Positions 1,715 through 40,477 are shown, counted from the first letter of the stretch. The stretch is 64,000 nt of DNA from Azolla caroliniana (GCA_043228905.1 JBHGNT010000018.1:11160001-11224000); one strand, 5' to 3'. Notes: a model not told the origin generated them from the letters alone. Translations and numbers: made by a program.

Positions 1715-1732
1715 TTCACGTCAGGTTCACCA
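1715..1732 (-). promoter_or_regulatory. Primer binding site, tRNA-Trp type
   Basis: TGGTGAACCTGACGTGAA on the minus strand, a few nt after the LTR end. It is complementary (1 mismatch) to the plant tRNA-Trp 3' end ...TTCACGTCGGGTTCACCA. Confidence 0.85.
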
Positions 1733-1737
1733 AATGA

Positions 1738-3807: not shown

Positions 3808-4110
3808 GCTTGAATAACCAAAGACAGGTTTTCTGGGGAGAGTGGAGACGATATAACTAATGATACCAAGTCCTGACGGAATAAAAGTATGAACCTCTAG
3901 ATAAACGGGGAACCGAGAAGGATGATAGTATAAGATAGGGTCCCCTCCTCCAACAGGGTCAGAAGAGATAATATTAGAGTTTCAATCGGTTGACGACATG
4001 GTAATTGCACCCGCATGTATGAGAGGAGGTGGTAAAGGTAGGAATGTTGTCACTGAAACAAACTGAACGGATAGGGATAATCTATGCATGGTATTTCCGG
4101 GTCCGCGCGT
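3808..4110 (-). pseudogene. cox1: NUMT: mitochondrial cox1 fragment, 3' part, in unedited (genomic) form
   Basis: Minus-strand translation [99 protein letters not shown]. It is gap-free colinear with plant COX1 [100 protein letters not shown]. Confidence 0.95.
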
Positions 4111-4728
4111 TGTTGCGAAGTTTCGCGTTCGTGTGTAGGAAGAGGCGGGACCACGGGGGACTTGGACCAAGGAGAGAGTGAGAGAGAGAGACAGATTTGC
4201 AGATACATAGAAGGAAAACAAGAGCAAGAAACAGGAATCCGATTACTATAATCAGTAGCTTACAAATCGAACGGTTACAACCGGCAAACCGGTAATGGAC
4301 CTAACACAGGGTCCTACTCACGCACACAGACGACAGCCACTCGACTCAAAGAAACAAAGGGGGGGGGGGAGCCTCTGCTGGAATCACACGGGCTGTCCAC
4401 AAAGCAGAGGCAGCGAACTCCCGGCACCCACAGAGAACAACGGTCAGAGGAGAGAGAGCTCAACACTCGGTTCTGCAGCAGCACTTCCTCCTCGCCAACG
4501 CGCGATCCCTTTTTCTCCCTTCTCTCCCTCCTTAAATAGTCTATTCCCTGCCCCCTCTCCATAGAGATACGCACAAAATCCCTAATAGATGTGTACTACC
4601 TAGTATTTACATCAGCCGACCTAGTTATGAATCATGTACAAAATATCAATTCTCGCGTCCTCCCATGTAAGAGCCGGTTCATGTGCCTTTTTCTCCGATT
4701 CTGCCTATGGCCGGTTTTCTTCACGACA
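4111..4728 (-). repeat. 3' LTR of gypsy A
   Basis: Near-identical to 39824-40439; TG...CA termini; adjacent to the PPT. Confidence 0.92.
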
Positions 4729-4796
4729 TCCACCCCCACCAAACCGCGCATCCACCAGCATGCGCCAGAGACGGGTAGATACCGAAGAAATCGGCT

Positions 4797-7578
4797 TCAC
4801 TCGTCGGTCTCCGATTCTTCACCAGGCCCGAACCGATCGTCGTCGTCGCTCTCGCTCGCCGGCTCCAGCTTGTCTTCAAACCGCTTCTTGAACACTTTGA
4901 TCCGCTTCCCGGCCACTGGTACCGCTAACCGTGTCCCGTCGAGTTCCGCGAGGTGGTACGTGCCGTTGTCGTTTGCGCTCGTCACCGTGTAGGGCCCGAA
5001 TCATCTCCTCGCGAACTTTCGCACCGCCTTGTGCTGATTGTCAAGGCTGCTGTTCTACACCAAGACCCAATCACCTTCCTCGATCTTCTTTGGTCGCAAG
5101 CGGTCCGGTTGAATCGGGTCTTATTCCGCTCCCTTGCCGCCCGCAACTTTTCCTTCGCCCTTTTCATCTCCTCCAGCCTCCGCTCGAGTTGCCGAATCCG
5201 CACCGCCAGCAACTCCTCCCGGCTCATCTCGTCCTTCCAATCTACTGCCGCCCACGAAGATACCGTCCGTTCCACCGGCATGATCGGCTTCTGTCCATAC
5301 ATAAGCTCTGCCGGCATAAACCCTGTCACCGAACTGTGCGTAGTTTGGTCCGCCCATAGTGCGTAAGGAAGGAGCCGTGGCCAATTCCCGACCTGCCCTC
5401 CGCATGCACGCACTAACGCCTTTACGATTGGCCCGTGCCCACGTTCTACCTTCCCGTTCACCTCCGGGTTGTATGCCGTAGTGAGGGAGAGTTTGACCCC
5501 TAGCCGGTCGAATAGCTCCTCAGCTTCCCGCGCATCTAGCTCTCCCTAGTCCGCCACGATCCTCCCGACGCACCCGTACCGACACACTACCTCTTCGATT
5601 AGGAACCGGCATACTGCTGCGGTTGTCTTGTTCTGCAGTGCACGACCTTCCACCTAGTTCGTTAAGTCTTGCCGCGCAAGCACCAGGTATCGCATCTGTC
5701 CTACTCCCATCGACATTGTCACCAAGTCTACCATCCACTTGAAATGGACCGTACGCGGGTAGGTCGTGTGTAGCTCTTCCCGATGTCGGACTACGGAGTG
5801 CATCTAACAGCTTTCGCAAGTCGTTACGAACCGATGCACGTCCCGGTACAGCCCCGACCACCAGTACTTCTCCTTCAGCTTCTCGAATGTGGCCCATGTT
5901 CCGCGGTGCTCGTCCCAGGGACTCTCGTGAAATGCCGCCAGTAATTCCTCATGTTCTTCTTTCTTTACCACTACTCGGAGTGGGATGTCGTTTCTTTTCT
6001 TTGGGTGCCTCCATATGCACCCGTCCCGTAGGAAGAATCGGTACGCCTTCTTCCGTACCCGGCTCACCTCTTCTCTCGTCCACGCTACGTCCCGCGTCAT
6101 CGCCCGTAGGAACCTCCCGATTTGGAGCCACTCCCCGTCGTACCTGCTTTCGTCGAATTCGTTAAGCGTTGGAGTGTCCCCTTTCCTCATCGTCACGTTA
6201 GCCGACCCGAAGAAGTCCTCGCCGACTTCTTCGTCATCCGAAACCATGCCGTCTTCGTCGTTGAACCTTGCTCTCGAAAGCATGTCGGGCATGGCGTTAT
6301 CTTTTTCGGAGATGTGTCGTATCTCCGGGTTCAGGGACTTAATGTACGCTGTCCACCGGAGCATTGCTAGGTCCGACGTCACGCATCTGGAAACCATGCC
6401 GAGTATCGGCAGGCAGTCCGTCTCGATGATCACTTCCGTCCCGATTAGATAGTCCTTGTCGGCCTTGACTACCGAAACGATACCCCAAAGCTTGTGCTTA
6501 ACTTGGGCGTATCCTTGCTGCCGCTCGCTCAATACCTTTGCCCCAAACCGGATCGGGAATCGTACGCCGTCCTTGTCCTCCTGACTAATTACCCACTCGA
6601 TCCCGGTCGGGCTCGTGTCCACCGTCATGCAAATGGGGACATCCTTGCCGTAAACCGCTTTTCGGAGGGCCAGTGCTACCGTAAGCGCCTCCTTTAGTCT
6701 CTGAACCGACTCCGTGTGCTCCGTCCTCCACTCAAACCTACGCCCTTTCTTCAATAGCCCGTAGAGCGGCTCCACAACATGCGCATAGTGCAGAATCCAG
6801 ATGTGGTAGACCATGCATGCCCCCAAGAATCTGCGGACCTCCGTACCGACCCGCAGTCGTCCCTCATTGTGGAGATGGCTTCTACCTTTGCCAGAGACGG
6901 TTTCCTACCGTAAGACCCGCACAGGTGTCCGACCACCAAGATCTCCGACTGCCCGAACGCCGATTTTTCTCCGGAGAAGGTGAGTTGTGCACTCCCGAGC
7001 CTCTGCAACACCTTCTCGCAGTCGCTGATGTGGTTCACGACGAACCTCCGGCATCCGTCTGGCCCAATAGTCTCGTCCGCATCTTCCACCGGACACCCCT
7101 TTATCGGGATGTCTTCCAAGAATGGCATGGTGATGTCCGGGATGCAGTCCCTTAGCACCTTGTTCATTGTGTTCACCATATGCGCCACCGAATTCGTCCC
7201 GCCTTGTGGTCGGGTACACATCCGTACTAGGCCGAGAGGAGTTCGCATTGTCGTGATATCCCTGCTCTCCACGGCTAGCTGGAACTGGTCGTACCCCGAG
7301 TATAAGTCACCGACTGAATAGATCGACCTTCCAGCGAAGGCCTCCGCGAACTCGTCTATGGTCGGTCCGATTCCTGCATTACGGATGGTCACCCTGTTGA
7401 CCGGTTGCAGGTCCTGAATGAAGCGCAGCATGCCGTTCTTCTTCGGCACCGTAAACCACCAATTCGAATACGGGGCACTGGACGGTTCGAGGATGCCCAT
7501 CTCCACCCTTTGCTTCAGGAGCTCCATCAACTTCGGGATGTGAGCTCTCGGCACTGGAATTGGTTTGAGATTCCACGG
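4797..7578 (-). pseudogene. pol: pol of gypsy A: RT, RNase H, integrase (frameshifts and stops)
   Basis: PWNLKPIPVP...DLYSGYDQF...MPFLEDIPIKG (RT), VDTSPTGI...IETDCLP (RNase H), HRG...CESC and NGKVERGH (integrase). Confidence 0.92.
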
Positions 7579-8267
7579 TGACAGGAACTTCACGTTCCCG
7601 ATGAACAACGCTCGGCCACAACCGAGTCTAAAATCAAACACAGAAAACGAGTAATGAAACGCGCGACACAAAGGAGAGAAGAGTACACGGGATGTTTAAC
7701 GTGGAAAACCCTGAGAGGGAAAAACCATGGGAGTCCACAAACTCCAAACTATCACTATGTCACAATGATTACAACAGTGAGCTCACGGAGGCAACGACCT
7801 CGTGCTCACAATCTTCGCCATAGGCGGCGGTTACAACAGAGGCAACGACCTCTTTCTCTCTCTGTACACTGTTACGCGCTCTCTATTCTTGCACCAACAA
7901 GAATGACAACAACTGTTTCATCTATTTGCCCTAAGTCATATTTATACTAATATGACTTTTCGGCTATTTACAAATATAGCCTCGATGGACTCTCAGAAAC
8001 ATATTTACGAATATGTCTCTTCATCCGGTGAGCACTTCTCACCGGGCCTTCACCATCCGGCTCTTGCCGGGTACTCCTCATCCGGTTCCCACCGGGTCTT
8101 CCGTAGCCGGGTACTCTTCATCTGGTTTCACATCGGGTCTTCACCATCCGGCTCTTGCCGGGTACTCTTCATCCGGTTCCCACTGGGTCTTCTATAGCCG
8201 GGTCTACCACATCCGGTTTTGGTACTGTTCTTCTCACTTCCCATCCGGAGGGACCTGTTTCCTAACA
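7579..8267 (-). repeat. 3' LTR of copia H with ~50-bp tandem subrepeats (8041-8215)
   Basis: TGTTAGG...GTCA termini on the minus strand; homologous to LTRs 55031-55636 and 59739-60379. Confidence 0.85.
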
Positions 8268-8276
8268 AACTCCCCC

Positions 8277-11200
8277 TTCACTCCGGCATGGGATGTCTTA
8301 CTAGTCCGATCCGCTTCCGGCATGCATCCAGCTTGTCGAGTATCAGTACTTTGGTCAGCATATCTGACCCGTTCTCGGTCGTGCGGATCTTCGTCAACGC
8401 GAACTCCTGATCATCTACTCTTTCCCGGATCTAGTGATACCTTCGTTGGATATGCTTCGTTTGGGAATGGTAGGCCGCATTCTTAGCAAGGTGGATGGCA
8501 GTTTGACTGTCGCAATAGAGCCGGTATTCATCTTGCTGGATACCGAGCTCTCTGATGAAGTCCTTCATCCATAATATTTCCTTGCCAGCTTCCAAAACCG
8601 CCATGTACTCCGCCTCTGTGGTTGACAACGCAACCGTCTTCTGCAGCCTCGACTGCCACGAAACAGCTCCCCCTGCATATGTCATTACATACCCGGATGT
8701 AGACCGGCTAGTATCCACATCAGTCGACATGTCCGAATCGGTAAAACTGTCAAGTTGAGGTTTACCGGAGCCGAATCAGAGACACATGTTCGAAGTGCCG
8801 TTCAAGTACCGGAGTATCCATTTGACCGCGTTCCAGTGCTCCTTGTCGGGATTGCTCATGAACCGGCTCACCACTCCGACTGCGTATCCTATATCCGGTC
8901 GGGTACACACCATTGCGTACATTAGGCTCCCGACGGTAGAGGCATATGGAACCTTCATCATATCAGCCTTCTCTGCTTTCGTCTTCGGGCTTTGCTTACC
9001 GGATAACCTGCAGTTTGCCGAAAGTGTCGATCCGACTGGTTTCGCATTTGACATGTTGAACCGTTGAAGCACCTTTGTCACGTATTTCTCCTGTGACAGC
9101 CACAACTGCTTCGTTGGCCAGTTCCGGATGATATGCATCCCCAACATCTATCTCGCCGGACCCAAGTCTTTCATCGCGAAGGTTCGGGTGAGAGCCTTCT
9201 TCAGCATCCGTATTTTGGCTTGGTCCCGTCCGACGATCAACATGTCGTCCACGTACAGAAGGAGCATTAGGAAGTCGCCTCCTTCGAACTTCTTCACAAA
9301 CACGCAGTGATCGGCTTGCATCTTGTGGTACCCTTGATCGGTCATGAAGGAGTCGAACTTCCGGTACCATTGCCGGGGGGCCTGCTTCAACCCGTAGAGG
9401 CTCTTCTTCAACCGGCAAACCAGGTGCTCCTTCCCTTTCTCCACGAATCCTTCCGGTAGCTGCATGTAGATCTCCTCTTCGAGGTCACCGTGAAGGAATG
9501 TCGTCTTCACGTCCAACTGCTCTACGTCGAGGTTCATGCTTGCCACTATACTCAGCACCGTCCGGATGGAGGTCATCTTTACTACCGGGGCAAATATCTC
9601 GTCGAAGTCCACGCCCTTCTTTTGCTGGAACCCCTTCACCACAATCCTGGCTTTGTATCTTGGGGGGTTGCCGGCATATCCCGGTTTCAACTTGTACACC
9701 AATTTGTTACGGAGTGCCCGCTTTCCTTTCGGCAACTCCACCAATTCGTATGTATGGTTCTCATGCAGGGAATCCATCTCATCGTGCATGGCACTTAACC
9801 ATTTGCGGTTGTGGGTGTCATCCTTCACTTCTTCGAAGCTTTCTGGCTCCCCCTCATCGGTTAGCAGCACATGCTCTGCATCCGGAAATCTCCGGGGGGG
9901 CCTTCTCTCTCTGAGAGGATATCTCCATCTTTGGGCTTCGGTAACCGGCTCCTCCATTTGCTCTTCATCCGAATCCGATTTCATCTTCCTCTACTTCTTC
10001 TTCTGCCAGTTCGGCATCCTCACTGTAACCGGCTGGTTCCTCGAGTGCTGACCGGTCTCTTGTCGGTTGGGTCTGTTGATCGTAGAATCGATCCTTACCA
10101 GTCGACTCGTAGTTCATTATCTTCTTCTCCGACTCCCAGTCGGTGAGCGTCTTGTCCTCCATGAAGATAATATCTCGACTCCGGAATACCTTCTTGTCAA
10201 CCGGGTCCCACACTCGGTAGCCGAACTCATCGTCGCCGTAACCGAGGAATATGCATGGCCGGGTCTTTGGATCTAACTTTCCTCTCCGGTCCTTAGCTAC
10301 ATGCACGTACGTGAGACACCCGAACACCTTCAGATGCCGGTAGGACACTTCCTTACCGGTCCAGACTCTCTGTGGCGTGTCTCCGTCCAAGGGTACTGAG
10401 GGTGATCTGTTTATCAAATATGTCGCCGTCGAAAGTGCCTCAGCCCAAAACTTCTTGGGTAATTTTGCATGCGCCAGCATACTCTGGACCCTCTCCATTA
10501 TGGTCCGGTTCATCCTCTCGGCCAACCCGTTTAGTTCCGATGTCTTCGGCACGGTAAATTTGAGCCGGATTCCCTTCGAGCGGTAGTACTCCTCGAACTG
10601 CCCCCGGTATTCTCCTCCGTTATCTGCTCGAACCACCTTCAACTTCCGGCCGGTTTCTCTTTCCACTCTCGCGTGGAGCTCTTTGAAGACAGATAACACC
10701 TGATCCTTCGTCTTCAACGGTGTGGCCCACAACTTCTGGCTGTGGTCATCTATGAACGTCATGAAGTACTGCGATCCTGCATGTGACTTCGTGTCCACTT
10801 GAAACAAATCAGTATGCACCAACTCCAGTGGTGCATTACGTCTCATCGGTGGCCTCGATCGGAAGGAGGTTCGGTTTTGCTTACCGGCCAGACAATCAGT
10901 GCACTTCTCCAAGTGCACGTTCTTCAATGGAATGAGGTTGTTGTCTGCAAGCCTCTTCATCCCCTTCTCGCTCATGTGACACAACCTCTTGTGCCACAGC
11001 TCACCGGTAGTGTCGGATGCCATGTTCACTTCCTCTGGACATAACCGGGCATTCATTATGTACAATGTGTTGACCTTTCGAGCCCGAGCCATAATCAGGC
11101 TCCCTTTGCTGAACTTCATAACCTCGTTCCGGATGCTACCCATGTAGCCTTCATCATCTAGCCGACCGGCTGATATCAGGTTCAGACGAACCTCCGGAAC

Positions 11201-12258
11201 GTGTCGGACATCCTTCAACAGCAGCTTGCATCCGGTTGGTGTTGTCAACCACACGTCTCCTATGCCGACAATTCGGCATGTACCTTCATTCCCCATCCGG
11301 ACACAGCCGTGATCACCGACTGAGTAGGATGAGAAGCATTTCCGGTTCGAGGTAAGGTGGAATGACTCTCCAGAGTCGACCACCCAGGTCATCTCATCGC
11401 CGGCAAGGTTTAGCTCACTCTCCTCGGTGATGAGCATCAACTCTTCTTCACTTGCCGTGATTGCCGCCGTTCCCTTCCGGTCCGACCCCCTCCGGTCTTT
11501 ACCATTCCGGTCTGGTGTCCGCTTCGAATCGGTACCGTCGGTTTCCTTGTCTTTTCGGAAATGCCGACAGTTCTTCTGGAAGTGTCCTGGCTTGCCACAA
11601 TAGAAGCAAGTAGGCCTCCCCCTTGACTTTGACCGTGTCCCTGACTTTTCCCGGTTCTGGGGACTACGGTTCCTATGTCTTCCGCGTTCCGATTCGGTAA
11701 GGAGCGCTTTGGAGTCGGAGCTCGTATCCTTATCTTTCCGACGCGCCTCCTCATCTAGCAAGCTCGACTTCACTCTTGCTAGGGATAACTGTTTCCCTTT
11801 CGGCCTGGCGTTGCCCAAAGTGACAACCAACGTCTCCCAGCTATCCGGGAGGGAACCGAGCAAGAGTAGCGCTAGTACCTCATCAGCGAGAGGCACTTCC
11901 AATGAAGTTGCTTGGTGTATCAGCCCCTGGAAGGCATTCATGTGCTCCGCCATGCTGGAGCCATCTTGGTACCGGAGTCTTACTAGCTTCCGGAACACCG
12001 AAACCTGATTAACAACATTTTTGTTTTGAAACATAATGTCAATCTTCTCCCAGAGCTCATGAGCCTTGCTCTCTTCATTGAAGTTGTTGTATAGGCTCAT
12101 GTCGATGAAGCACCGTATGTACGCTGTTGTCTTCATGTGCATCACCTCCCATATCGTGGCGTTGATCTTGTCCGGCCTCTTGTCCCCGAACTAAACCGGC
12201 AACCAAAGATCTTTAACCACGAGCATGTCCCTCATCTTTGACTTCCATACTGAATAGT
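8277..12258 (-). pseudogene. gag-pol: Gag-Pol polyprotein of copia H, disrupted
   Basis: CFYCGKPGHFQKNC knuckle, WVVDSGES protease, RADNGGEY integrase, QLDVKTTFLHG and YVDD RT, YCDSQTAI RNase H. Frameshift near 9970; stops at 9148 and 8431. Confidence 0.92.
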
Positions 12259-12260
12259 TC

Positions 12261-12845
12261 CCATCGAACTAACCGGAACGGTCCGGTCTTCTCTAAGGTC
12301 TTCACCGATCACCTTTTGCAACTCGCCCAAGGTGTCGTCAAAAGAGACCGCCTCCACGACACCGCTGATTTTTTCGTCGGGGGAGAGGACTCTGCATCCC
12401 CTGAGCCGCTCCTCCGCTCGCTTCCTCTACCGGCCCATGACGCCGGCTATAGTACAACCTCCATTTCCGGCGAACCAAAACTTCCTACCTACTGTACATG
12501 TGTGGGGTTCTTCCGGTACGTCCGGACTACCGCGGCCCCATGCCTTGATAGCCCTCTCTAAAAATCCCCTCGGTTGTTGTCGCCGAGGGTCTCGCGATTC
12601 CTCTCATGGTTCGGACATACAATCATGAGCTGGACGGAATGCCAACCGTCTTGGCTCTTAATGTGCGTGTACACCGAACCGTTGTCCATCACCTTCGTCT
12701 CCATGCATGCTGTCGTAATGTACGGTTCGCCGAGAATCACCGGGTGCGAGGATGTTTCCTGCACGAAGAAATGTTGATCTATCTCGACGTCACCGATCTT
12801 TACGCGTACATTCGAGCACGCACCATGAACTCCTCCGTAGCACGC
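12261..12845 (-). pseudogene. Gypsy A protease C-terminus, frameshift site and start of pol frame
   Basis: FFVQETSSHPVILGEPY...RETLGDNNRGDF* (12558-12764), followed in the -1 frame by LERAIKAWGRGSPD. Confidence 0.85.
12502..12567 (-). promoter_or_regulatory. Putative -1 ribosomal frameshift element, copy A
   Basis: G GAT TTT TAG followed by the stem GGGCTATC/GGTAGTCC, with loop TGGGG able to pair with downstream CCCCA. Confidence 0.75.
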
Positions 12846-14461: not shown

Positions 14462-14465
14462 TCTT

Positions 14466-14483
14466 TGGTGAACCCGACGTGAA
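14466..14483 (+). promoter_or_regulatory. Primer binding site, tRNA-Trp
   Basis: TGGTGAACCCGACGTGAA, 18-nt complement of the tRNA-Trp 3' end. Confidence 0.9.
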
Positions 14484-14505
14484 CAAGGCAGCAGAGGAGC
14501 AGAAG

Positions 14506-15405
14506 ATGAGGAGTTCGAAGTACGGCTCCTGGAGAAATACGGGCTGGATGACGCGCTTCGGCTTTCGAAGTGGGGCTTCATGGAGTGGGTAGAGTTCCCC
14601 AACAAAGGAAGAAATGCGTCGGTACTCCTCCGGGAGTTTGAGGAACACTTTGCGTGCCTTTCGGCGCTCGATCGGACCGTTCTGGACACAAGTCGTGTCC
14701 TACTATTTGTCAAATCGGTTGACGCACGGGATCGGGAGCAAGTGGGCTCCTTACTGGAAACCGAAGACGGGCTAACGGCCGACTGGACCGCGGTAAACAG
14801 AGTCTGCGGCCGTTTTGACAAGCGGTGGGAGTGGGCTGATACAGGGGCGGGTCCTATCGCAGCAAGGAAGCTCGAACCGATACCACAGGCGCGAAGGGAA
14901 GAGACCCAGGAGTGGCTCGAAACTGATTCGGCTTCGACCGGCGTGGTCAGAGGCTCGTTCGGGGGAACAGCTTTGGAGGAGTTGACACGGGTGGTAAAGG
15001 ATCTCCAGATCGCCCAGGCTCAGAGGGAAGGCGGCGAACAGGCTCGTGACCGACGGCCTCCGGCAGGAAATAGGTGCATGTGGTGCGACGAGGTCGGCCA
15101 CATCCGGAAAGACTGCGGGGATTTTGCAGAGGCCTTGAGAAGCCGGGTAGTGTACCTGTGGGAAGGTCGGGTGCACGCCAACGATACCCGGAGGGCCCTG
15201 AACCGAAACGACGGGCGAGGAGGAATGAAAAGGCTGATGGAAGAGGCGGCGGCCCGGCACGCGGAGACCGTCCACTACTCGGCGTCAGCCGGTATTCGGG
15301 TCGGAGGCAGCGAGGCCCGGAAGGAGAGCAAAGCCAGGTTCTGGCCGACGATGCTGGAAGGCCTCGCCGGTGCCCGACTAAGGAAAGATGAGGTGGACCG
15401 CGCGG
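14506..15405 (+). pseudogene. gag: gag of gypsy B, 5' part (internal deletion; interrupted by C)
   Basis: ORF 14580-15668 with the CMWCDEVGHIRKDC zinc knuckle; the frame resumes at 21294 (DRA|EKRV). Confidence 0.85.
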
Positions 15406-16040: not shown

Positions 16041-16113
16041 TCCGCCCCCAACTAACCGCGCATCCACTGGCATGCGCCAAATTGAGTTGGGACAGAGAAA
16101 ACCGGTCCAGCCT

Positions 16114-20615: not shown

Positions 20616-20658
20616 CTTCTGCTCTTCTGCCGCCTCCTTCACGTCGGGTTCACCAAGA

Positions 20659-25790: not shown

Positions 25791-25792
25791 GA

Positions 25793-26448: not shown

Positions 26449-26460
26449 ACGCGTCGCCGA

Positions 26461-28964: not shown

Positions 28965-29422
28965 TGTTACCCGAACCCGGACAGTCAGTTTTACCGAACA
29001 AGTGGGAAAGCGTCGAAAACGGAGTCGGTTCGGATCGACTGTTCGGATCAATGACTCAGCAGTAAACGAAGAGAACTAAGTTAGTTAGATAATTTTGTAA
29101 TTCTTGATAGTAAGTAGGAATAGTTCTTGATGAGAAAAGACCTTCGGTATACCTATAAAAGGGAACCGAAGGCATTGTAAGAAAGGTCGTTTTATTTAGT
29201 AATATAAGTTTAAGTTAGGAATATCCTGTACGAATTCTGTGTTCTTTCTATTGTCTATGTTCTTAAGTGCAAGTTTTCCTAATTTATAACTAAGTAACGA
29301 TCACGGTAATTACCGATTAATATAGTATAATTCCGTTCGTAAAACACAATTCCTTGTTAGAACGTTGAGTAGCAACGTTCACTCTTCTGTATCGGTAGTA
29401 GTTAGTAATTAGCCGATTAACA
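28965..29422 (+). repeat. 5' LTR of element E
   Basis: TGTTA...TAACA termini; TATAAAA at 29154. Confidence 0.95.
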
Positions 29423-29433
29423 CAGAAGAATTT

Positions 29434-29446
29434 TGGCACGCCCGGT
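29434..29446 (+). promoter_or_regulatory. Primer binding site, probably tRNA-Arg
   Basis: TGGCACGCCCGGT, 11 nt after the LTR; resembles the TGGCACGCCC tRNA-Arg PBS of Tat-like elements. Confidence 0.7.
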
Positions 29447-29481
29447 TACATCTGCAATTAAGCAGAGAACAAATCGAATGG

Positions 29482-32400
29482 ATGTCGTATGAAGAGGAGT
29501 CACCGGTCAGTTGTAAGCGCCCTCATACAAGGTCAGTTACGAAGGTAGTGCAGCAAGCGTTCATTGCGCAAGAACAGCCGGAATCAAGCACAAAGTGGTC
29601 GAAACTTCCTGACTTATCCGATCAAGTACCTTCAGACGAAAAACAGATGGAAGAGGTATCATTTTACGACATTTGGGACGATATGCCTTATACTTATTCT
29701 AAGTTCCGGGAAGGAACAGATGCGGAAGCACATGTTAGGGATTTCTTAACGACATGGGAGATTAACCATGGAGCTCAACGATTGTCGGCAGATGCCGAAG
29801 ATAAGTCAAAAATCGCTGAGTTCGTCTTATCATTAGACGGATATTCCGCCAATTGGTTTGCGCAGAACGGTCTTCAAGGATTTCCATCCTTTGAAGTGTT
29901 AACTAGTAAATTTTTACAATTATTTCATCAACAAATTCTGCAGAAGGATTTGATTGCGCAATTTTATGCGTTATATCAAGAAAAAAATGAAACAGTATCT
30001 CAGTTTGTGATACGATTTCAGAACTTACAGCTTCAGATTTCAAGGCCGATTCCGGATAAGGAATTAAAAGAAGTCTTTCTAGAAGCTGTAAAAGAACCAT
30101 TAAGGACGACATTGAAAGTGTTCGATTTTCGAAATCAGACTATCGAACAAGTAATTGATAAAGCAATAGAAATGGGGGGACCACCGGTCAATGTTCAGAG
30201 TATGGACATTTCGGCATTACACCGTACATTACCAACAATAGAGGAGTTACAATTTCGACAAGCAGTTCAATGCACCACTTGTTTAAATACGGGGCATTCG
30301 ACAATTGAATGTACGTTAAGAACACATTGTACAATATGTCATTCAAAATTACATTCAGTAGAACAATGTGAATATAATCTGCTTAATAAGACTACGGCGT
30401 CAGTACGACAAATTTTTACTGACAATGGTTACCAAAATAACACTAATCTGTTCAATGGTTATCTAAATAATAATTTTTCACAAAATCAGCAAAATGTACA
30501 ACAGAATCCGGTTCTACAGCCAAATCAGATCTTTTCACAACAAAATATGCAACCCACTCAAGTGACTCAAGCATTTCAACCAGGTTTTGCTCAATCCAAC
30601 CCACCATTCGTACAGAATCCGAATCAATATTTTCAACAAAATAATCAAAGTTTCCAACAAGGTAACCCACCATTTCAAGGGTTTCAACAGAACTGTCCGA
30701 ATGTGCAACCGAATTCTACATTTCAACCAAATCCGGCATTTCAACCGGGTAATATGACCTTTCAACATAATACTCAAACCGTTCCACAAAATAATCAAAT
30801 GTTTCAACAGAGTAATTTTCCGCCAAATCAGGAGTTCGGGATACCACACAATGTAGCACAACCAAATGATAATACTGAACAATTTAGGCAGAATCGGTAT
30901 AAAAACAAGAGATTTTACAAACCAAAAGCTACACGTCAATACCAACAAAACCCGAGTGGTAATGAAGAGCAGCAATTTAATAACGGCCAATTTGCACATG
31001 GAGAGACCAGTGCAACATTTGTACCCACTTGTTATATTTGTCGACAACTAGGCCATTATGCTAATCAATGTCCGGTTAAAGGAAAGGGTCCAGCAGTTAA
31101 TATGGTAATACCGGAAGTTCAGCAAGTAACGACACGCAGCAAAAGCAAACAATCAGAGTGGGAAATTCAGGAAGAAGTTCGGAAGGCGGCAAAAGAATGG
31201 GTGGACGAAGCAAATCAAAGTAATGTGAATCGAATGTTACAAGACAATAACATTGACCAGGACATCGCTGTACAACAGTCATTGGGGAATAAGGAACAGG
31301 AAGAAACTTGGAAACTGTTGGCTGATTGCCAAGTGTCATTGCCACTTACGGGCTTACTTAAGTTAGTACCAAGGTTTACAGAAAAAGTGGCAGCATTAAT
31401 TGCATATAAAGGTTCCGAACAAATAGCAGTACACTACAATCAGCCAAGTAATAACCCTTCGATCATGGATGAACAGAATCCGTCGATTAAGGTAATACTT
31501 TACGGGCAAGAAATCGGAAATGTGATTATAGATGGAGGCTCGGGTGTTAATGTGATTAACAAAACTACATGTGAAAAACTGGGAATCACGGAATGGGAAG
31601 CATGTCCGTTTTGGTTACGAATGGCAGATACAAGTACGGTACGACCGATTGGTTTGCATCGACAACTGGATGTAATAATCGGGGGACACAATTTTCAGAT
31701 TTCGGCAGTAATTTTGCAGTTAGAAACACATGGAGCATACCCCTTGTTATTGGGGAGACCATGGTTAAAGACAGCTAATATTAAACAAAATTGGAAACAA
31801 AATGTGCTAACATTTAGGAAAGGAAAAACTAAGGTCAGGATTCCGACGCACAACAAAGTGACAACAAGCAAACAGAGTTTACCTGTACATGCAGAAGCAG
31901 TTAATATGATGGAAGGATTGGACGAGGAAGAAGAAAGTCAGTATTTCAATGATAATCAGAAAATCATCCCTCTATTTGAGGTAGATATTTTGCAAGCATT
32001 AACACCATATGTAGACTCACACGAAGAAGTGCCAATAGATGAGCAAACAATGAAAGAAATACGAATGCAACAAGAAGCTACAGATAAGGAAATGAAGGTA
32101 TCTCAGAGAGTGCAAGCCTCAGCATTGGAGGAGATCGATTTGGCAGGAGTACAGGATGCTGAAAGAAAAACAGTCTTGATTGCTAGAGATTTGGCGGAAA
32201 ATGACAAACGGACATTAACAACATTACTATTACAATATAAAGATGTTTTTGCATGGTCGTTTGACGATATGAAAGGTCTGGATCCCGCTTTTTGTCAACA
32301 TCAAATCAATTTGCATAAAGATGCAAAGCCAGTACAACAACGCAGGTACAGGTTGAATCCGAATTATGCTATCAAAGTAAAAGAAGAAATCGATAAACTC

Positions 32401-34974
32401 TTAAAAGTAGGATTTATTCGACCCGTCAAAAAATCAACATGGCTAAGTCCGATAGTAGTAGTCCCGAAAAAGAATGGGAAAATTTGCGTATGTGTGGATT
32501 ACAGAAAATTGAATGCAGCGACAATTACAGATGCGTTTCCGTTGCCATTCACAGATGGGGTATTAGATGCAGTAGCGGGACATGAAATTTATAGTTTCTT
32601 GGATGGGTTAAGTGGGTACAACCAAGTACGGATGAATCCGGAAGATCAGGAAAAAACAGCTTTCGTCACAGAATGGGGTGTCTTTGTGGCAGTAGTAATG
32701 ATGTTCGGTTTAAAAACAGCTCCAGCTACGTTTCAGCGGGTAATACAGGAAATATTCGGGGAATATATTCCAGCTTTCATGCAGGTGTTTTTAGATGACG
32801 TTGCGGTATATAGTCGGAAAGCTGATCATTTTGAGCATTTACGGCTATGTTTAGAAAAATGTCGAAAAGGGCGTCTTAGCTTAAATCTAGCCAAATGCGC
32901 ATTCGGAGTAATGAGTGGTACGTTACTTGGGCATATTGTCAGTCAAGAAGGGATTGCAGTGGACCCAGACAAAGTTAAAGCAATTATTGAGGCAACACCA
33001 CCAACAAATGCTAAAGCTCTAAGTAGATTTTTGGGTCAAATTCGGTGGCACAGTAGAATGATGAGATATCTAGCAGACATTGCTATTCCGTTACACACAG
33101 CAGTACACAAAGTTCCTTTTATATGGACAAGTATAGAACAAGATGCATACGAATGTCTCAAGAAGATGCTGACAAAGGTTCCGGTAGTTCAACCACCGGA
33201 CTGGAACAAACCATTTCATGTTTTCGTCGATGCGTTGGACATTGCCATAGGCAGTGCTTTAATGCAATTATCCGAACCAAACTGGTATAGGCCGGTATAC
33301 TATGCCAGTAGGAAACTTTCGTCGGCCGAAAGAAACTATTCAACAACCGAAAGAGAAGCTTTGGGAATGATATATAGTGTGAACAAATTTCGACATTACC
33401 TTTTGGGTAAGAAATTTACATTTCATGTGGATCATTCGGCTCTACTGTATCTAGTTTCCAAACAAGAATTGACAGGCAAGTTAGCCAGATGGACATTATT
33501 GCTTCAAGAGTTTGAATTCGACATTATACATCGACCAGGAGCACAGCACGCGATTGCTGACTATCTCAGTCGGCTTGAGTCTGGAGAAGAAGCGGTTGGG
33601 GTTAAAGATGATTTTCTAGATACTCAATTATTTCGGGTTCAGGCAGTAAAAGCACAAGAAGTGAATGAGGAAAAAGAGGATGAATGGATTTCCGAAATGA
33701 CGATATTTCTATCAACAAGAATTCCTGCCGAACACATGTCGACAGATGAAAGAAAAAGAATTGCAGTACAAAGTCGAAATTTTTGTTTGTTTAATGACAT
33801 GTTGTATCATAAAGGAGCGGATGGAATATGGCGAAGGGCAGTACGGAAATTTGAAAAATCAGCCATATTAACAGAGTCACATTGTGGAATTGCTGGCGGT
33901 CATTACGCAGGAGAAGCAACAGCCAGAAAAATATGGAATAGCGGGTTATGGTGGCCAACGGTGATGAAAGATGCTAACGAATACTGTAAGAAATGCGATT
34001 TGTGTCAAAGAATGGGGCAACCGACCGAAAAGGATCGAATGCCTTTTCAACCGGTTTTACCTCTTGAGCCATTTCAGAAATGGGGCTTAGATTTTGTTGG
34101 CCCATTCAAACCAACAGCTGCAAGAACCGGTAATCGATATATCATAATTGCGACTGACTATTGCACAAAATGGGTTGAAGCAAAAGCTCTCAGGGACAAT
34201 ACAGCAGCATCCACAGCAAAATTCCTGTATGAAAATATATGGTGTCGATTCGGTTGCCCAATAGAATTGGTAAGCGATCAAGGCACTCATTTTATTAACA
34301 AGTTAATTAACGAATTAACCAATTACTATGCCGTAGTTCATAAGAAAAGTACGCCTTACTATCCCCAAGCTAATGGATTGGCAGAATCGACAAATAAAAC
34401 AATTCAAACAATTTTAAAGAAGATAGTGAATGAAAATCGTACTGATTGGGATCAAAAGTTAAATAGTGCATTATGGGCATATCGTACTTCGTACAAAACA
34501 TCCATTAAATCAACACCTTTCCGAATGGCATTCGGACTTGAAGCCGTTATGCCGATCGAATTTCAAATTCCGACACTTCGTATCCAAGCGACGAATAAGT
34601 TAAATGAAATAGAATCGGAGCAGATACGCAAAGAAGCTTTATTAGTATTAGAAGAAGCACGGATTCAATCAATGTCAGCACTAGAACACAAGCAGAGACA
34701 AATCAAGGCATTCGTAAATCGACATCGAAGGAAATCGGAAGAGCAATTCGGAATTGGGAAACCGGTATTGGTATTCCAGACGAGAATGGGACTTATGCCT
34801 GGGAAACTCCGGTATAGATGGACAGGTCTAGTATGGATAATTAATAGTAAAAATGGTACGTATCAGCTGGGATCATTAACCGGAGAGGTTTTACCGAAAT
34901 GGGTAAATGGATTCCGGCTTAAACCGTATTTGGGAGATATGCCGGTAAATCCGTTTATTCAAACGGAAGAGTAA
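29482..34974 (+). CDS. gag-pol: Gag-Pol polyprotein (1830 aa): Gag with three Cys/His knuckles and a Q/N-rich region, protease, RT, RNase H, integrase
   Basis: Uninterrupted ORF; CTTCLNTGHSTIEC, CTICHSKLHSVEQC, CYICRQLGHYANQC; IIDGGSGVN; CVDYRKLN, FLDD; RNYSTTEREAL; GGHYAG, CDLCQR, WGLDFVGP, SDQGTHF, PQANGLAE. Confidence 0.96.
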   Translation: MSYEEESPVSCKRPHTRSVTKVVQQAFIAQEQPESSTKWSKLPDLSDQVPSDEKQMEEVSFYDIWDDMPYTYSKFREGTDAEAHVRDFLTTWEINHGAQRLSADAEDKSKIAEFVLSLDGYSANWFAQNGLQGFPSFEVLTSKFLQLFHQQILQKDLIAQFYALYQEKNETVSQFVIRFQNLQLQISRPIPDKELKEVFLEAVKEPLRTTLKVFDFRNQTIEQVIDKAIEMGGPPVNVQSMDISALHRTLPTIEELQFRQAVQCTTCLNTGHSTIECTLRTHCTICHSKLHSVEQCEYNLLNKTTASVRQIFTDNGYQNNTNLFNGYLNNNFSQNQQNVQQNPVLQPNQIFSQQNMQPTQVTQAFQPGFAQSNPPFVQNPNQYFQQNNQSFQQGNPPFQGFQQNCPNVQPNSTFQPNPAFQPGNMTFQHNTQTVPQNNQMFQQSNFPPNQEFGIPHNVAQPNDNTEQFRQNRYKNKRFYKPKATRQYQQNPSGNEEQQFNNGQFAHGETSATFVPTCYICRQLGHYANQCPVKGKGPAVNMVIPEVQQVTTRSKSKQSEWEIQEEVRKAAKEWVDEANQSNVNRMLQDNNIDQDIAVQQSLGNKEQEETWKLLADCQVSLPLTGLLKLVPRFTEKVAALIAYKGSEQIAVHYNQPSNNPSIMDEQNPSIKVILYGQEIGNVIIDGGSGVNVINKTTCEKLGITEWEACPFWLRMADTSTVRPIGLHRQLDVIIGGHNFQISAVILQLETHGAYPLLLGRPWLKTANIKQNWKQNVLTFRKGKTKVRIPTHNKVTTSKQSLPVHAEAVNMMEGLDEEEESQYFNDNQKIIPLFEVDILQALTPYVDSHEEVPIDEQTMKEIRMQQEATDKEMKVSQRVQASALEEIDLAGVQDAERKTVLIARDLAENDKRTLTTLLLQYKDVFAWSFDDMKGLDPAFCQHQINLHKDAKPVQQRRYRLNPNYAIKVKEEIDKLLKVGFIRPVKKSTWLSPIVVVPKKNGKICVCVDYRKLNAATITDAFPLPFTDGVLDAVAGHEIYSFLDGLSGYNQVRMNPEDQEKTAFVTEWGVFVAVVMMFGLKTAPATFQRVIQEIFGEYIPAFMQVFLDDVAVYSRKADHFEHLRLCLEKCRKGRLSLNLAKCAFGVMSGTLLGHIVSQEGIAVDPDKVKAIIEATPPTNAKALSRFLGQIRWHSRMMRYLADIAIPLHTAVHKVPFIWTSIEQDAYECLKKMLTKVPVVQPPDWNKPFHVFVDALDIAIGSALMQLSEPNWYRPVYYASRKLSSAERNYSTTEREALGMIYSVNKFRHYLLGKKFTFHVDHSALLYLVSKQELTGKLARWTLLLQEFEFDIIHRPGAQHAIADYLSRLESGEEAVGVKDDFLDTQLFRVQAVKAQEVNEEKEDEWISEMTIFLSTRIPAEHMSTDERKRIAVQSRNFCLFNDMLYHKGADGIWRRAVRKFEKSAILTESHCGIAGGHYAGEATARKIWNSGLWWPTVMKDANEYCKKCDLCQRMGQPTEKDRMPFQPVLPLEPFQKWGLDFVGPFKPTAARTGNRYIIIATDYCTKWVEAKALRDNTAASTAKFLYENIWCRFGCPIELVSDQGTHFINKLINELTNYYAVVHKKSTPYYPQANGLAESTNKTIQTILKKIVNENRTDWDQKLNSALWAYRTSYKTSIKSTPFRMAFGLEAVMPIEFQIPTLRIQATNKLNEIESEQIRKEALLVLEEARIQSMSALEHKQRQIKAFVNRHRRKSEEQFGIGKPVLVFQTRMGLMPGKLRYRWTGLVWIINSKNGTYQLGSLTGEVLPKWVNGFRLKPYLGDMPVNPFIQTEE

Positions 34975-35103
34975 AAAAAAGAAAAAAAAAGAAAAAAGAA
35001 AAAAGAAGCTAACTAACTAACTCACTCAATAGTTCTTGTCAAATGCAGAAATACAATCTTGCCATAACAGTCTGAATCGACTATAAATAGAAAGAGGAAT
35101 TGC

Positions 35104-37866
35104 ATGATTATTAGTAAAGTAGTACAACCACTACACGTAGAGTTAATACTAATTAATTCCTACATTAATAGCAATTACTATTCTTTAGTCATAATGCATA
35201 AATTAATATCTTTAAAGCATATTTCTGTATCGTCTATGTCGCCAAAACAACAGAAACGAGTGCAGATATCGAAACAGTCTGAGCCTTCGTGCCCTAGTTC
35301 GCCCAAACTCTGTTTTTCTGATTTTCATCGCTACAGAAGCTGTGCAGATCTCCAACCGTCATCGACAAGTGATTCAGAACAAGCAAACACAAAAGTCATG
35401 CCGATCCCTGTGTCTGAAGAACTGCGATTATGGCTTCATGAGAGAAACTTACAAGGTTTCATCAAAATAGCAGAAGCGGAACCTCATCCGCAGGCGGAAG
35501 AATTGGTACAACAGTTAGACATCACCAAGGTCACCACAAAGAAAATACGAAATGCATTACAGATGCCAAGAGGAGGCTTTGAGGCAGTTAAAAAACCTTC
35601 AGCAGAAGCACTCCAATCGTATTTCGGGGAATACTCACCCTCGGCAAAAGCATATCAGACTTATGGAGGTCGAGATGAGTTTTTCCATGAAGTGGCTAGA
35701 TTTTTACTAGAGGTGGGATTTGTCAGTCCCCGTTTTTATTGTATGCCGAAAAAAAGGGCTGGGTTTATCATAGCCGCATACGAAAAAGAGGATTTCAACT
35801 GGCCACTATTGTCGGGGGAAGCTCTGAGAGAGCAGCTACAAGGGGTAAAAACAGGAAAACCAATGAAGCAAATTTTTGGTCGTTGGCTATCGGTATTGTT
35901 TCCGATTCAAGAATCGGAAACTCCTGTTCAGTCAAGAAGACCATCGATAGTACAAGCACCGCGAAGACACCGACAGGTAGTACATGAAGAATGGATAGAG
36001 GAAGAATCGGCACATGCCGATAATATACAAACGAATATGCCTCAGTCGGAACTACCAAGACCAGAGAATTCCGAAAACAGGCAACCAGCAGCCGAACAAG
36101 AAACAGTTGACAATTTGATAAACAAGCAACAGCCGACAGAAAATCGACAACAAGTAGAGAAGATGCGACAGAAGACAAGGATTAAACAAAAGGCTAATCG
36201 GCAATTCCAACCAGAAAACAGTGAGGGGTCAGCACCGAAAAGGCAACACACAAAGGAAAATTCGAATACGACTGTAGTAGCAGAAGTAATAAAACCAGGG
36301 AATGAGAGCGTTTCGACACAACCTCAACAAGGACAATCTTCAAAAGTAGCAATTCGGGAAGCACATGGGTACTTGGATATTCCACCAGTAGCACATGAAT
36401 TAGCTGCCATTTTACAGTTCGGAACTTCATACGAACTGGTTGAATGGTTGGCTAAAAGACTGACAGAAGTATCAGAACGGCTGGCTCAAGAACATAATGA
36501 CCGAATAATGATACAGAAAGCCTTACGAGGAGTGTTGGAACCTCAAGAAAAAGCAGAGATAGAGAAAATTGGCCGGAAAAGAAGTGCACAGAATAGAGGG
36601 GAGGCTATTGAAATGCCACCATTACATGAAGCACTAGTCGAAATTCATAAAGAATATGAAACGACACGCAAAGCAGCCAGTGATATGGCTGAAAGATACA
36701 AAAGTGTATCAGCATCGGCGGAGGTGCTGAAACATCAGTTTTGTAACATACAGGCAGAAAATAAAGAACTAAAAGAAAGTCTAAACAAATGGGAAACACA
36801 GGCACGGCTTATGGTGTCTGAGTCAGAATGGCAGCAGAAATTGGAGGACGCTGAGAAAGCACGTCAAGCAGAAACAACAAGGGCCAACAACGCTGTATTT
36901 CGAACTACAGAATTAGAAAAATAAATAGAAACCATTCAGAATGGTCAATACAAAGTTCTCGAAGAAAAAAATCAATTAATAAACGAATTACAGAAAAATC
37001 TAGAAGAAGCTAAGACGGCCAATCATACATATACCGAACAAATTGAAGAATTCAAAAGGTATATAGTGTCACAGGAAAGTCAATTGACAGAAAAAGAGCG
37101 GAGTCTTGAAGAAGTCAACAGAAGAATTACGGAACAGCAGGAGGAATGGAGCAAAGAGAAATCGGCATTCGAACAACAACTGGACGAAATTCGAAAGATA
37201 TCGGAACAAAGACGGCTGGACATATATGTAGTAGAATCCAAACTAATGCGAGCTGAAAGTGAAAACTGAGCCACTATTACGGATTTACAGAAAGAGTTGC
37301 AAACCGCCCAATACGTCGCAAGCATCACTAGGGACAAAGTGCAGCACATCATAGGGAAACATCGAAACCTAGCAAAGAAAATGATCGATGAATCCCTTGC
37401 GCAAGGATGGAAGTTATGGACGGCACAAGCGGCGGAATTACAGTTATTGCGTGCCGACAAAAATAACCGTCAGGTCCAAGGTGCAGGTTTTTTTAAAATG
37501 GCACAAAAGGATATTGACAATATCCAAGAGGATATCATGAAAGATATGGACGAAATTGCGGCATTTTACAGAGAAGAAATTCAACGTATTATGCAAGAAT
37601 TCGACAAAAATGATATAGGCACTTCCGTCCAGTTGGATAAAATCAAAGCCGAAAGAACCAGCAAGACTCCTGGTCTTCAAGCTCCCGGAAGAAGTGAACC
37701 AGAGCAGCCAACCGAATCACAACATTCAAAACCTGCTCCGAATGACAACTGTGACACAGATGAAGATGAAGAGGAAGAGGAAGATATAGGTGGAATACAT
37801 CCAAGGCCAGAAGAGCCTTCGATTTTTGATATTCTGAACGATTCGGATGAAGAGCTACAGGAATAG
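35104..37866 (+). pseudogene. Extra ORF of element E (about 820-920 codons depending on start), two premature stops; globular N-terminal domain, disordered linker, long coiled coil, acidic tail
   Basis: ORFs 35104-36924, 37066-37269 and 37297-37866 share a frame, broken only by TAA (36922) and TGA (37267), each one C-to-T change from CAA/CGA. Confidence 0.85.
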
Positions 37867-37910
37867 GCGTGGGTTCGCTGGACAAGGTCCTGGCCCACGG
37901 ACGTGCCAAG

Positions 37911-38367
37911 TGTTACCCGGACCCGGACAGTCAGTTTTACCGAACAAGTGGGAAAGCGTCGAAAACAGAGTCGGTTCGGATCGACTGTTCGGATCAATGA
38001 CTTAGCAGTAAACGAAGAGAACTAAGTTAGTTAGATAATTTTGTAATTCTTGATAGTAAGTAGGAATAGTTCTTGATGAGAAAAGACCTTCGGTATACCT
38101 ATAAAAGGGAACCGAAGGCATTGTAAGAAAGGTCGTTTTATTTAGTAATATAAGTTTAAGTTAGGAATATCCTGTACGAATTCTGTGTTCTTTCTATTGT
38201 CTATGTTCTTAAGTGCAAGTTTCCTAATTTATAACTAAGTAACGATCACGGTAATTACCGATTAATATAGTATAATTCCGTTCGTAAAACACAATTCCTT
38301 GTTAGAACGTTGAGTAGCGACGTTCACTCTTCTGTATCGGTAGTAGTTAGTAATTAGCCGATTAACA
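37911..38367 (+). repeat. 3' LTR of element E
   Basis: Near-identical to 28965-29422. Confidence 0.95.
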
Positions 38368-39779
38368 GTGGACAACCAAAACTCCGCCTGCTTCTTCCCA
38401 TCCGACGTGCTTGGGTTGCCGGCACCGGTCGGTTTCAGTCCGAACCGGGTCTCGTACCTCTGCGGGGGACCGATCCCTCTGGCCTTTCCTGCCCGTTTAT
38501 CTTCCACTAGAACCTCGTAGTTCTGGCAAGCGCTTCTACGAAGCCCGTTTTCTCTTCGACCTAATCGTCCCATCTGGTGACCACCTGGACCCGCTATTCC
38601 GCGCGGTCCGCCTCTTCCTTCTTCAGCCGAACTCTGGAGAGGCCTTCTAGCACCAGCGGCCAGAATCCGGAGTCCTTCGCCTTCCGGGTCTCATCACCCC
38701 TGACCCGAATTCCTCCCGAAACTGAGTAGTTAACGGCTTCTACATGTCGTGCCGCGGCTTCTTCCATCAACTTCTTCATTCCGCCGTGCCTTGTATTCAG
38801 TTCCAGGGCTCTCCAGGTCTCGCTTGCGTGCACCCGCCCGTTCCAGAGGTACACCACGTTGGTGCTGAGTGCGTCGGCGAAATCCGCGCAATCCTTCCGA
38901 ATTTGACCGATCGCGTCACACCACATGCACCGCTGCCCAGTCGGCGGCCTCCGGTCGCGAGGTTGTTCGCCGCTGTCTCTCCGTGCTTGTGCGATCTGCA
39001 GGTCGTGCACCATCTGTGTCGGCTCCTCCAGATGGGCCTTTGACCACATCGTTCAATGCCGACCCCGACTCCAGCCAAATTCGGGTCTCTTCCTTCCTAC
39101 CAGCTGGCACCAATACCGGCTCCTCGAGCCTCCTCGTCGGGACTGGTCCTGATTCCAATGAGCTTTCGTCTCTCCACTCGCGCCATTTGTCGAAACGGCT
39201 ACAGACCCGTTTTACCACGGCCCAGTCTGCTGTGAGCCCTTCGTCCGTCTCCAATAGGGGACCCACCTTTTCCCTGTCGAGCGTGTCCACCGACTTGACA
39301 AACAGTAGTACTCGACTCGTTTCGAGCACGGTCCGGTCCAGCGTCGACAGTCGCGCGAATCATTTTTTGAACTCCTGGAGAAGCGCCGACGTGTTCCTCC
39401 CTTTTCCGGGGCTTTCCACCCACACCATGAAGTCCCGCCTGGACAGCCGAAGTGAGTCATCAAACCCGTACTTCTCGAGGAGCTGCAGCTCAAACTCCTC
39501 CCAAGTCTGGCATCCGGCCAACACCTCGAGCACCTCCGCGTGGATGCTCGGCGTCACCACCCGAGGGAATCTGGACAACCGCTTGTCCACCAGGATATCC
39601 CGCATGATCATTTCGGCCCGGTAAGCCTCCAAATAACTTGTGGGATTCTTCCCACCGAATCGGCCTATGCTGTCGACGATCGATTCAATGGCTCTGTCGA
39701 GGGTACCCGTCCCCTCGCGAGCCCTCACCAGCCGGTCGACGGCTACCGCCATTGCCTCTGCTAGCTTCGATCCCCTCAT
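38368..39779 (-). pseudogene. gag: gag of gypsy A, 5' part
   Basis: MRGSKLAEAM...FGGKNPTSYLEAYRAEM; CMWCDAIGQIRKDC; several stops and frameshifts. Confidence 0.88.
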
Positions 39780-39801
39780 CTTCTGACTCCTTTGCCGCCT
39801 G

Positions 39802-39819
39802 TTCACGTCGGGTTCACCA
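39802..39819 (-). promoter_or_regulatory. Primer binding site, tRNA-Trp (copy A)
   Basis: TGGTGAACCCGACGTGAA on the minus strand. Confidence 0.9.
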
Positions 39820-39823
39820 ATGA

Positions 39824-40439
39824 TGTCGCGAAGTTTCGCGTTCGTGTGTAGGAAGAGGCGAGACCGGGTCTTGGACCAAGGAGAGAGTTAGAGAGAGAGA
39901 GAGAGAGTTGCAGATACACAGAAGGAAAACAAGAGCAAGAAACAGGAATCCGATTACTATAATCAATAGCTTACAAATCGAACGGTTACAACCGGCAAAC
40001 CGATAATGGACTTGACACAGGGTCCTACTCACGCACACAGACGACAGCCACTCGACTCAAAGAAACAAAGGGGGGGGGGAGAGCCTCTGCTGGAAGCACA
40101 TGGGCTGTCCACGAAGTAGAGGCAGCAAACTCCCAGCACCCACAGAGAATGATGGTCGGAGGAGAGAGAGCTTGACACTCGGTTTTGCAGCAGCACTTCC
40201 TCCTCGCCAATGTGCGATCCCTTTTTCTCCCTTCTCTCCCTCCTTAAATAGTCTATTCCCTGCCCCCTCTCCATAGAGATACGCACAAAATCCCTAATAG
40301 ATGTGTACTACCTAGTATTTACATCAACCGATCTAGTTATGAATCATGTACAAAATATCAATTCTCGCGTCCTCCCATGTAAGAGCCGGTTCATGCGCCT
40401 TTTCTCCGATTCCGCCTATGGCCGGGTTTCTTCACGACA
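39824..40439 (-). repeat. 5' LTR of gypsy A
   Basis: Matches 4111-4728. Confidence 0.92.
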
Positions 40440-40477
40440 GCATGTTAAGGATAATGGTTATAAAATTAATGAAACCT
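40440..40477 (-). pseudogene. cox1: NUMT: cox1 fragment, 5' part
   Basis: Minus strand reads GFINFITIILNM (COX1 GSINFITTIFNM) and continues in frame at 4110 across the TSD. Confidence 0.9.

Follow-up and report, generated by a model that had tools for sequence, protein, structure and literature searches.

In a 64,000-nucleotide (nt) stretch of nuclear DNA (JBHGNT010000018.1, 11160001–11224000; hereafter the window), we analysed a 337-nt fragment of the mitochondrial gene cox1. It lies on the minus strand within a degenerate Ty1/copia retrotransposon, copia G, and consists of two halves, at 40477–40440 and 4110–3808, as defined by DNA matches to a 3444-bp mitochondrial contig (L002). The fragment is very probably an ordinary nuclear insert of mitochondrial DNA (NUMT): unedited cox1 DNA of a Salviniaceae water fern was joined into a break in an integrated copia, and the insert was later split by a Ty3/gypsy element, gypsy A.

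The halves were mapped one by one onto L002. The left (5') half (40440–40477) covers codons 163–174 in Vigna numbering and is identical to L002 967–1004 at 37 of 38 positions, and the right (3') half (3808–4110) covers codons 174–274 and is identical to L002 1001–1303 at 287 of 303 (E = 1.5e-135). The whole fragment corresponds to cox1 nt 486–822 in the same numbering, with 95% DNA identity to the mitochondrial cox1 contig over 337 nt, and the matches of both halves reproduce exactly the ends and the length proposed in a preliminary description of the window. Translated on the minus strand, the left half reads GFINFITIILNM (40476–40441) and the right half TRGPG...TD*NSN...KPVFGYSS (4110–3808), with one in-frame TGA at 3984–3982. 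At 3927–3925 the nuclear copy has TAT where the mitochondrial DNA (mtDNA) has TAG (editing site cox1eC616).

The peptides on each side of the TGA were used as separate queries. The best match among solved structures was the plant COX1 chain 7jro_a, at residues 175–215 (E = 3.6e-4) and 219–272 (E = 9e-11). The 58-amino-acid (aa) piece scored 22.7 bits against Pfam COX1 (PF00115), under the gathering cutoff of 34.8, and the 42-aa piece had no Pfam COX1 match; such sub-threshold scoring is expected for short unedited fragments. The cox1 identity therefore rests on the PDB and DNA matches rather than on the Pfam score. A word search with the 58-aa piece gave no candidates, and a search of representative proteins gave generic COX1 only, at 62% identity or less, which did not resolve the lineage; the reference plant COX1 proteins P0008 and P0035 were taken from this search. 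Compared codon by codon with P0008, the fragment needs C>U at 26 positions, U>C at 15 and A>G at 4 (i.e., G>A decay), with 5 transversions, so that earlier counts of about 25, 13 and 4 hold. Read as COX1, it thus shows ~40 'wrong' pyrimidines as well as in-frame stops.

Copia coding sequence was found on both flanks of the fragment. The copia codons CAT AAG AGG (HKR; 40486–40478, minus strand) stand directly 5' of it, and the codons CTA GGC CAC ATG (LGHM) run from 3806, past its 3' end; the insert sits exactly between the R and L codons. A single G (3807, minus strand) separates the end of cox1 homology from CTA and is either filler or a mutated base: the L002 frame runs on as ...TCA GGC and then Thr-Val, whereas the window has G and then CTAGGCCACATG. 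No target-site duplication (TSD) was found at the junctions of the insert. The gag and protease-side region of copia G (44478–45983, minus strand), identified by tblastn with copia proteins of the window, has degenerated, with stops and a tandem duplication inside it, and ends ...VAVDSSGELWH, the terminus ...GELWH lying at 44482. The continuation (2346–3806, minus strand; LGHMSEKG...), found in the same way and also degenerate, comprises GAG-pre-integrase, integrase and the start of reverse transcriptase (RT). The domain order (Gag, GAG-pre-integrase, integrase, RVT_2) places copia G in Ty1/copia, as its tblastn matches are collinear with in-window copia proteins carrying Retrotran_gag_2, gag_pre-integrs, rve and RVT_2.

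Some further features of copia G were recorded. The tandem duplication in gag pairs 45080–45288 with 45191–45411 at 90% identity (window 45080–45411) and repeats an Arg/Ser-rich stretch that precedes the zinc knuckle. The pol similarity ends at ~2346, before the end of RT, and window 1–2345 holds minus-strand open reading frames (ORFs) at 1103–1693 and 473–1054 that have no Pfam match.

The site is empty in related elements. Two other copias of the window read ELWHKRLCHMSEKG uninterrupted, and a copia on the public contig L092, 78% related and from the same kind of host DNA, is likewise uninterrupted across the point between HKR and LGHM. The codon positions and these relatives confirm the placement first described, between HKR and LGHM and without TSD. 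The nuclear setting is further marked by nested long terminal repeat (LTR) elements with TSDs and LTRs that are 94–99.5% identical, and no other similarity was found between the 64-kb window and ~15 kb of mtDNA from the cox1 region. A candidate microhomology, CTAGG, present immediately upstream of the fragment in cox1 and immediately after the break in copia, has a geometry that does not fit its use in joining and was treated as coincidence.

With no TSD and a single unassigned base where its 3' end meets copia, the insert has the look of end-joining, and we infer this mechanism. A 337-nt piece of mtDNA, not mature mRNA, would have been ligated into a double-strand break in a Ty1/copia already integrated in the nuclear genome, leaving no TSD and one extra base at the 3' junction. 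Alternatively, copia G could have taken up cox1 before its last retrotransposition, so that the chimera would exist in several copies. This is improbable, though the insert was sought in other copies only in the 78%-related element and the in-window copias, that is, in relatives no more than 78% identical (a search with the copia G gag ORF found relatives at up to 81%). The insert, 338 nt long and with stops, destroys the polyprotein frame, the site is empty in every relative examined, and the 64-kb window, which holds several copias, contains no second copy of the chimera. If such uptake had nevertheless occurred, a copia lineage would have been spreading unedited cox1 through a fern genome, that is, mitochondrial DNA transduction by an LTR element.

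The contig L002, from an ENA metagenome assembly, was the one outstanding match of the 58-aa piece (93% protein identity) and holds the fragment stretch without interruption. A 66-aa ORF of L002 occurs on many contigs of ENA, JGI and Logan assemblies, and cox1 exon 2 was 100% identical on all 11 contigs fetched from these sources. Coverage of L002-type contigs is 23–51x. In assembly ERZ1034373, the cox1 contig has a coverage of 50.7 and a related nuclear copia contig 1.8; this copy number far above nuclear context is indirect evidence, as it comes from that assembly and not from the window's own reads. In L002-type cox1, exon 1 (residues 6–131) and exon 2 (residues 132–522) are both unbroken, with an intron of 1082 nt between them at nt 395; exon 2 has seven in-frame stops. 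The sole intron is cox1i395g1, the only cox1 intron of leptosporangiate ferns (PMC10027690 Table 1), so that the gene structure is that of this group. Rfam reported no family at gathering score on L002, intron included. The contig ends (1–110 and 3246–3444) are inverted tetranucleotide microsatellite runs, with ORFs reading MLACLLACLLAC..., in keeping with the reported breakage of mitochondrial assemblies of Salviniales at microsatellite-like repeats (PMC12548569).

We compared these sequences with the published editing sites of Salviniales, using the accessible part of PMC12548569 Table S5 (numbering = Vigna nt - 87), to which all statements on Salviniales sites refer. This part lists 163 cox1 sites, 60 common to five Salviniales species and 103 common to Azolla filiculoides, A. 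rubra, A. pinnata and Salvinia molesta. At all 163, L002 and a second contig, L082, carry the pre-edit base. When the published edits were applied by script to L002-type exon 2, the seven internal stops were removed, the terminal stop was created and ungapped identity to plant COX1 rose from 229/391 to 328/391. On the evidence of identity across assemblies, coverage, intron and stop structure, and the loss of stops after the published edits, L002-type contigs are, as far as sequence can tell, the mitochondrial DNA of a Salviniaceae fern. Moreover, 98% twins of an intact gypsy polyprotein encoded in the window occur in an ENA assembly series that also holds the cox1 contigs (ERZ27227288, ERZ27227308 and ERZ27227313); on this basis, the window and L002 come from the same kind of plant.

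The fragment contains 44 documented sites, 30 C-to-U (eU) and 14 U-to-C (eC); in the NUMT only eU527 (C>A) and eU631 (C>T) have lost the pre-edit base, which the other 42 retain. The in-frame TGA at 3984–3982 is itself a documented site of stop removal, cox1eC559. Among positions with T where C is needed, 14 of 15 are documented eC sites with T also in the mitochondrial contig, and the remaining one (window 3953) is a nuclear C>T change. Among positions with C where T is needed, 25 of 26 are documented eU sites; the 26th is the CTT of codon 172, also CTT in L002, for which the Haplopteris homologue eU559LF is listed as 'missing'. The U-to-C share of 32% is as in ferns (PMC6786969). The fragment thus has the genomic, pre-editing sequence of its donor, with 'wrong' pyrimidines and stops where Azolla and Salvinia mitochondria edit in both directions.

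Since 42 of 44 sites are unedited and the efficiencies listed for the fragment's sites are mostly above 0.9 (PMC12548569 Table S5), a mature-mRNA template is excluded. The preliminary description is supported in its view that the template was unedited and that the donor has reverse editing, including at the TGA for Arg. Its reasoning from strand asymmetry is sound and is confirmed by the editomes within the published sites consulted; for these, L002 does not carry T at the supposed C-to-U positions, and the matches are to cox1.

A nascent, still unedited cox1 transcript could also have been reverse-transcribed, e.g., by copia RT, and the location of the fragment inside a retrotransposon would suit this origin. 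We consider it a slim possibility. Steady-state editing is mostly above 0.9 at sites of which 42 of 44 are unedited here, the insert interrupts the gag-pre-integrase coding region midway and bears no signature of template switching, and a related copia has the empty site. Plant NUMTs, moreover, usually arise by DNA-mediated transfer. We therefore infer a DNA donor rather than unprocessed RNA.

The fragment is split by gypsy A, which together with its nested insertions occupies 4111–40439 (minus strand) and holds the cox1 halves 36.3 kb apart. The element has LTRs at 4111–4728 and 39824–40439 with TG...CA ends, a TSD, and the RT-RNaseH-integrase order of Ty3/gypsy, with RT (6751–7671) followed on the minus strand by RNaseH and an integrase zinc domain (5804–6826). 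On L002 the two halves overlap by 4 nt (ACGC), which is the gypsy A TSD; on the minus strand it reads ACGC on the right (4110–4107) and ATGC on the left (40443–40440), the left copy having arisen from ACGC by a CpG transition. A 4-bp rather than 5-bp TSD is seen in both of two related gypsy elements, 4111/40439 (GCGT/GCAT) and 15406/21293 (GCGG/ACGG), the two copies differing each time by one CpG transition. Younger elements nested in gypsy A have LTR pairs that are 98%, 99.5% and 98.9% identical. The proposed sequence of events is that a Ty3/gypsy element integrated into the fragment, duplicating ACGC, and was then invaded by further LTR elements that would have pushed the halves to their present distance. 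The fragment is therefore older than gypsy A, as had been stated.

Over its 337 nt the NUMT has 16 substitutions relative to L002 (4.7%), of which 6 are transversions and the others 5 C>T, 4 G>A and 1 A>G. The LTR pair of gypsy A differs by 30 substitutions in 613 aligned bases (4.9%), of which 25 are transitions (14 C/T and 11 A/G), many at CpG. The NUMT transitions are strand-symmetric, like those of the LTR pair, and several are at CpG. The 16 differences look like nuclear decay: since its transfer, ordinary nuclear mutation would have carried the fragment, apparently functionless, ~4.7% away from the mitochondrial sequence. LTR divergence is ~2.4% per copy compared with ~4.7% for the NUMT; assuming equal rates and negligible change in the mtDNA, the age of the transfer is about double that of the gypsy A insertion. 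This agrees with the physical order, in which the fragment came first and gypsy A later.

The preliminary description further saw in the fragment a fossil of an ancestral editing-site pattern. Within the documented sites, the pattern is the extant one, and its deviations are explained by nuclear mutation. These sites indicate no editing site lost or gained since transfer in the fragment, with a single candidate, the T at eU631 (window 3912). This T is most simply a nuclear C>T change; much less probably, it would record a true ancestral mtDNA state, the editing site having arisen after the transfer. That the T-for-C positions as a whole are products of nuclear C>T deamination rather than reverse-editing sites is hardly tenable: methylation-type decay does occur at the locus (LTR transitions 25/30, many at CpG), but the mitochondrial contig, too, has T at 14 of the 15 positions, all of them documented eC sites, which leaves 3953 as the only true C>T among them, and actual C>T changes (5) are about as frequent as G>A changes (4).

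The sequence evidence shows a Salviniaceae donor (the Azolla/Salvinia family), given the fit of L002 and L082 to all 163 listed sites, the 42 of 44 sites kept in the NUMT, and the single-intron structure. The preliminary description had proposed an Isoetes-like lycophyte. This was reasonable in that Isoetes combines heavy C-to-U with some U-to-C editing and has no intron in the stretch; however, intron absence in nt 486–822 is common to Isoetes and leptosporangiate ferns and does not separate them. The cox1 introns of Isoetes are i227, i266, i323, i395, i995 and i1305, the last trans-split (PMC2731911), and i227, i266, i323, i995 and i1305 are all missing from the matching mitochondrial gene, which has only cox1i395g1 and an unbroken exon 1. 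All 163 listed Salviniaceae sites fit, PMC10027690 Suppl. Data 2 marks only 1 of 11 reverse sites common with the fern Haplopteris as known from Isoetes, and the U-to-C share is fern-like (PMC6786969). For L002 the Isoetes reading is already refuted, and for donor and host together there is next to no chance that it is correct. Overall, a cox1 NUMT in copia, with an unedited template and reverse editing and older than the gypsy, stands from the first account of the window, while the Isoetes-like lineage and the fossil pattern do not.

Other donors were also considered and rejected. A hornwort donor would be expected to carry intron cox1i653g2 inside the stretch (PMC10012718), which is uninterrupted in both L002 and the NUMT. 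Intron i511, expected in Selaginella, mosses and liverworts (PMC10012718), and intron i624, expected in Psilotum (PMC10027690), are not in the matching mtDNA.

Within Salviniaceae, two leads suggest Azolla rather than Salvinia. Host DNA was recovered from many metagenome assemblies, which would suggest Azolla, given how Azolla is usually sequenced. Moreover, nested Gypsy/Copia elements make up the whole window, which speaks for Azolla rather than Salvinia cucullata (PMC6786969).

Several observations weigh against the proposed history of a NUMT joined from unedited Salviniaceae mtDNA. Transversions make up 6 of 16 differences in the NUMT compared with 5 of 30 in the LTR pair. Two adjacent double changes, TG>AT and CG>AT (window 4094–4093 and 4016–4015), both give AT, unlike transition-dominated decay. 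No intron position falls within nt 486–822, so that splicing status is uninformative and an unspliced, unedited precursor RNA is a formally possible template, in favour of the nascent-transcript origin. The species assignment of L002 rests on a published site list and not on a named reference sequence. Finally, the shared sites available do not discriminate Azolla from Salvinia, and the candidate Azolla-specific labels cox1eU427, eU950, eU1049, eU1121, eU1174 and eU323 are absent from the part of Table S5 searched.

The window contains further retroelements. A separate copia (40487–44477, plus strand; tblastn matches 40997–44276) lies inside copia G, 9 nt upstream of the cox1 fragment, with a perfect 5-bp TSD (TTATG), one copy of which (40482–40486, plus strand) is shared with the HKR codons of copia G (40478–40486). 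Its LTRs are very unequal: alignment is limited to ends of ~110 bp (83%) and ~64 bp (92%), and from these short alignments one LTR has a large indel. A young Ty3/gypsy at 28965–38367 has LTRs that are 98.9% identical, an intact 1830-aa gag-pol ORF (29482–34974) and a second ORF of 606 aa (35104–36924) with no Pfam match. Its 98% twins on several ENA contigs also have a long downstream ORF (643 aa on L001), and the family is probably active, with an extra ORF. One copia family is present in two copies, at 7701–12259 inside the gypsy nest and at 55082–59666 outside it, 88.6% identical over 4.6 kb and both with long open gag-integrase and RT frames.

By itself the fragment carries little weight: it is short, was dead on arrival (stops at 2 of 112 codons) and shows the editing-site pattern of living plants. 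In plants, NUMTs as a rule stem from unedited organellar DNA. The interest of this one is that a few hundred bases of a hyper-editing fern carry an editing 'fingerprint' sufficient to place the donor at family level, which here overturned a plausible but wrong guess at the lineage. The fragment is also a clean, datable marker in a stack of nested transposons (~4.7% against ~2.4% per LTR), and offers a direct, if small, sample of the nuclear mutation spectrum in sequence whose origin is known.

Among the closest known systems is the cox1 of Salviniaceae (Azolla filiculoides, A. rubra, A. pinnata and Salvinia molesta; PMC12548569), in which all 44 in-fragment sites listed are recognisable at the same ratio of 30:14, with stops at cox1eC559 and cox1eC616, the second now TAT in the NUMT. 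Unlike these genes, the nuclear copy is only 337 nt long, has 16 substitutions and is presumably neither expressed as cox1 nor edited. The cox1 of the fern Haplopteris ensiformis (PMC10027690; editome from Suppl. Data 2, numbering = Vigna nt + 45) also has the single intron cox1i395g1, and 15 C-to-U and 11 U-to-C sites in common with the NUMT, including the *R and *Q stops, but lacks ~15 NUMT sites (e.g., eU628 RW, eC466 SP, eC575 IT and eC658 FL, Salviniales numbering) that are all present in the Azolla/Salvinia list. Isoetes engelmannii (PMC2731911) resembles the fragment in heavy editing, some U-to-C sites and the intron-free stretch, whereas it has five more introns, three of them within the region that is the unbroken exon 1 of the matching mtDNA, and its reverse sites are largely unshared. 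As an insert, the fragment resembles plant NUMTs joined at double-strand breaks: it is short, non-functional and unedited, lies without TSD in a repeat-rich nuclear setting and shows transition-biased decay. Nothing essential sets it apart from these but the hyper-editing of its donor, which left it with ~59% COX1 identity and in-frame stops from the day of transfer.

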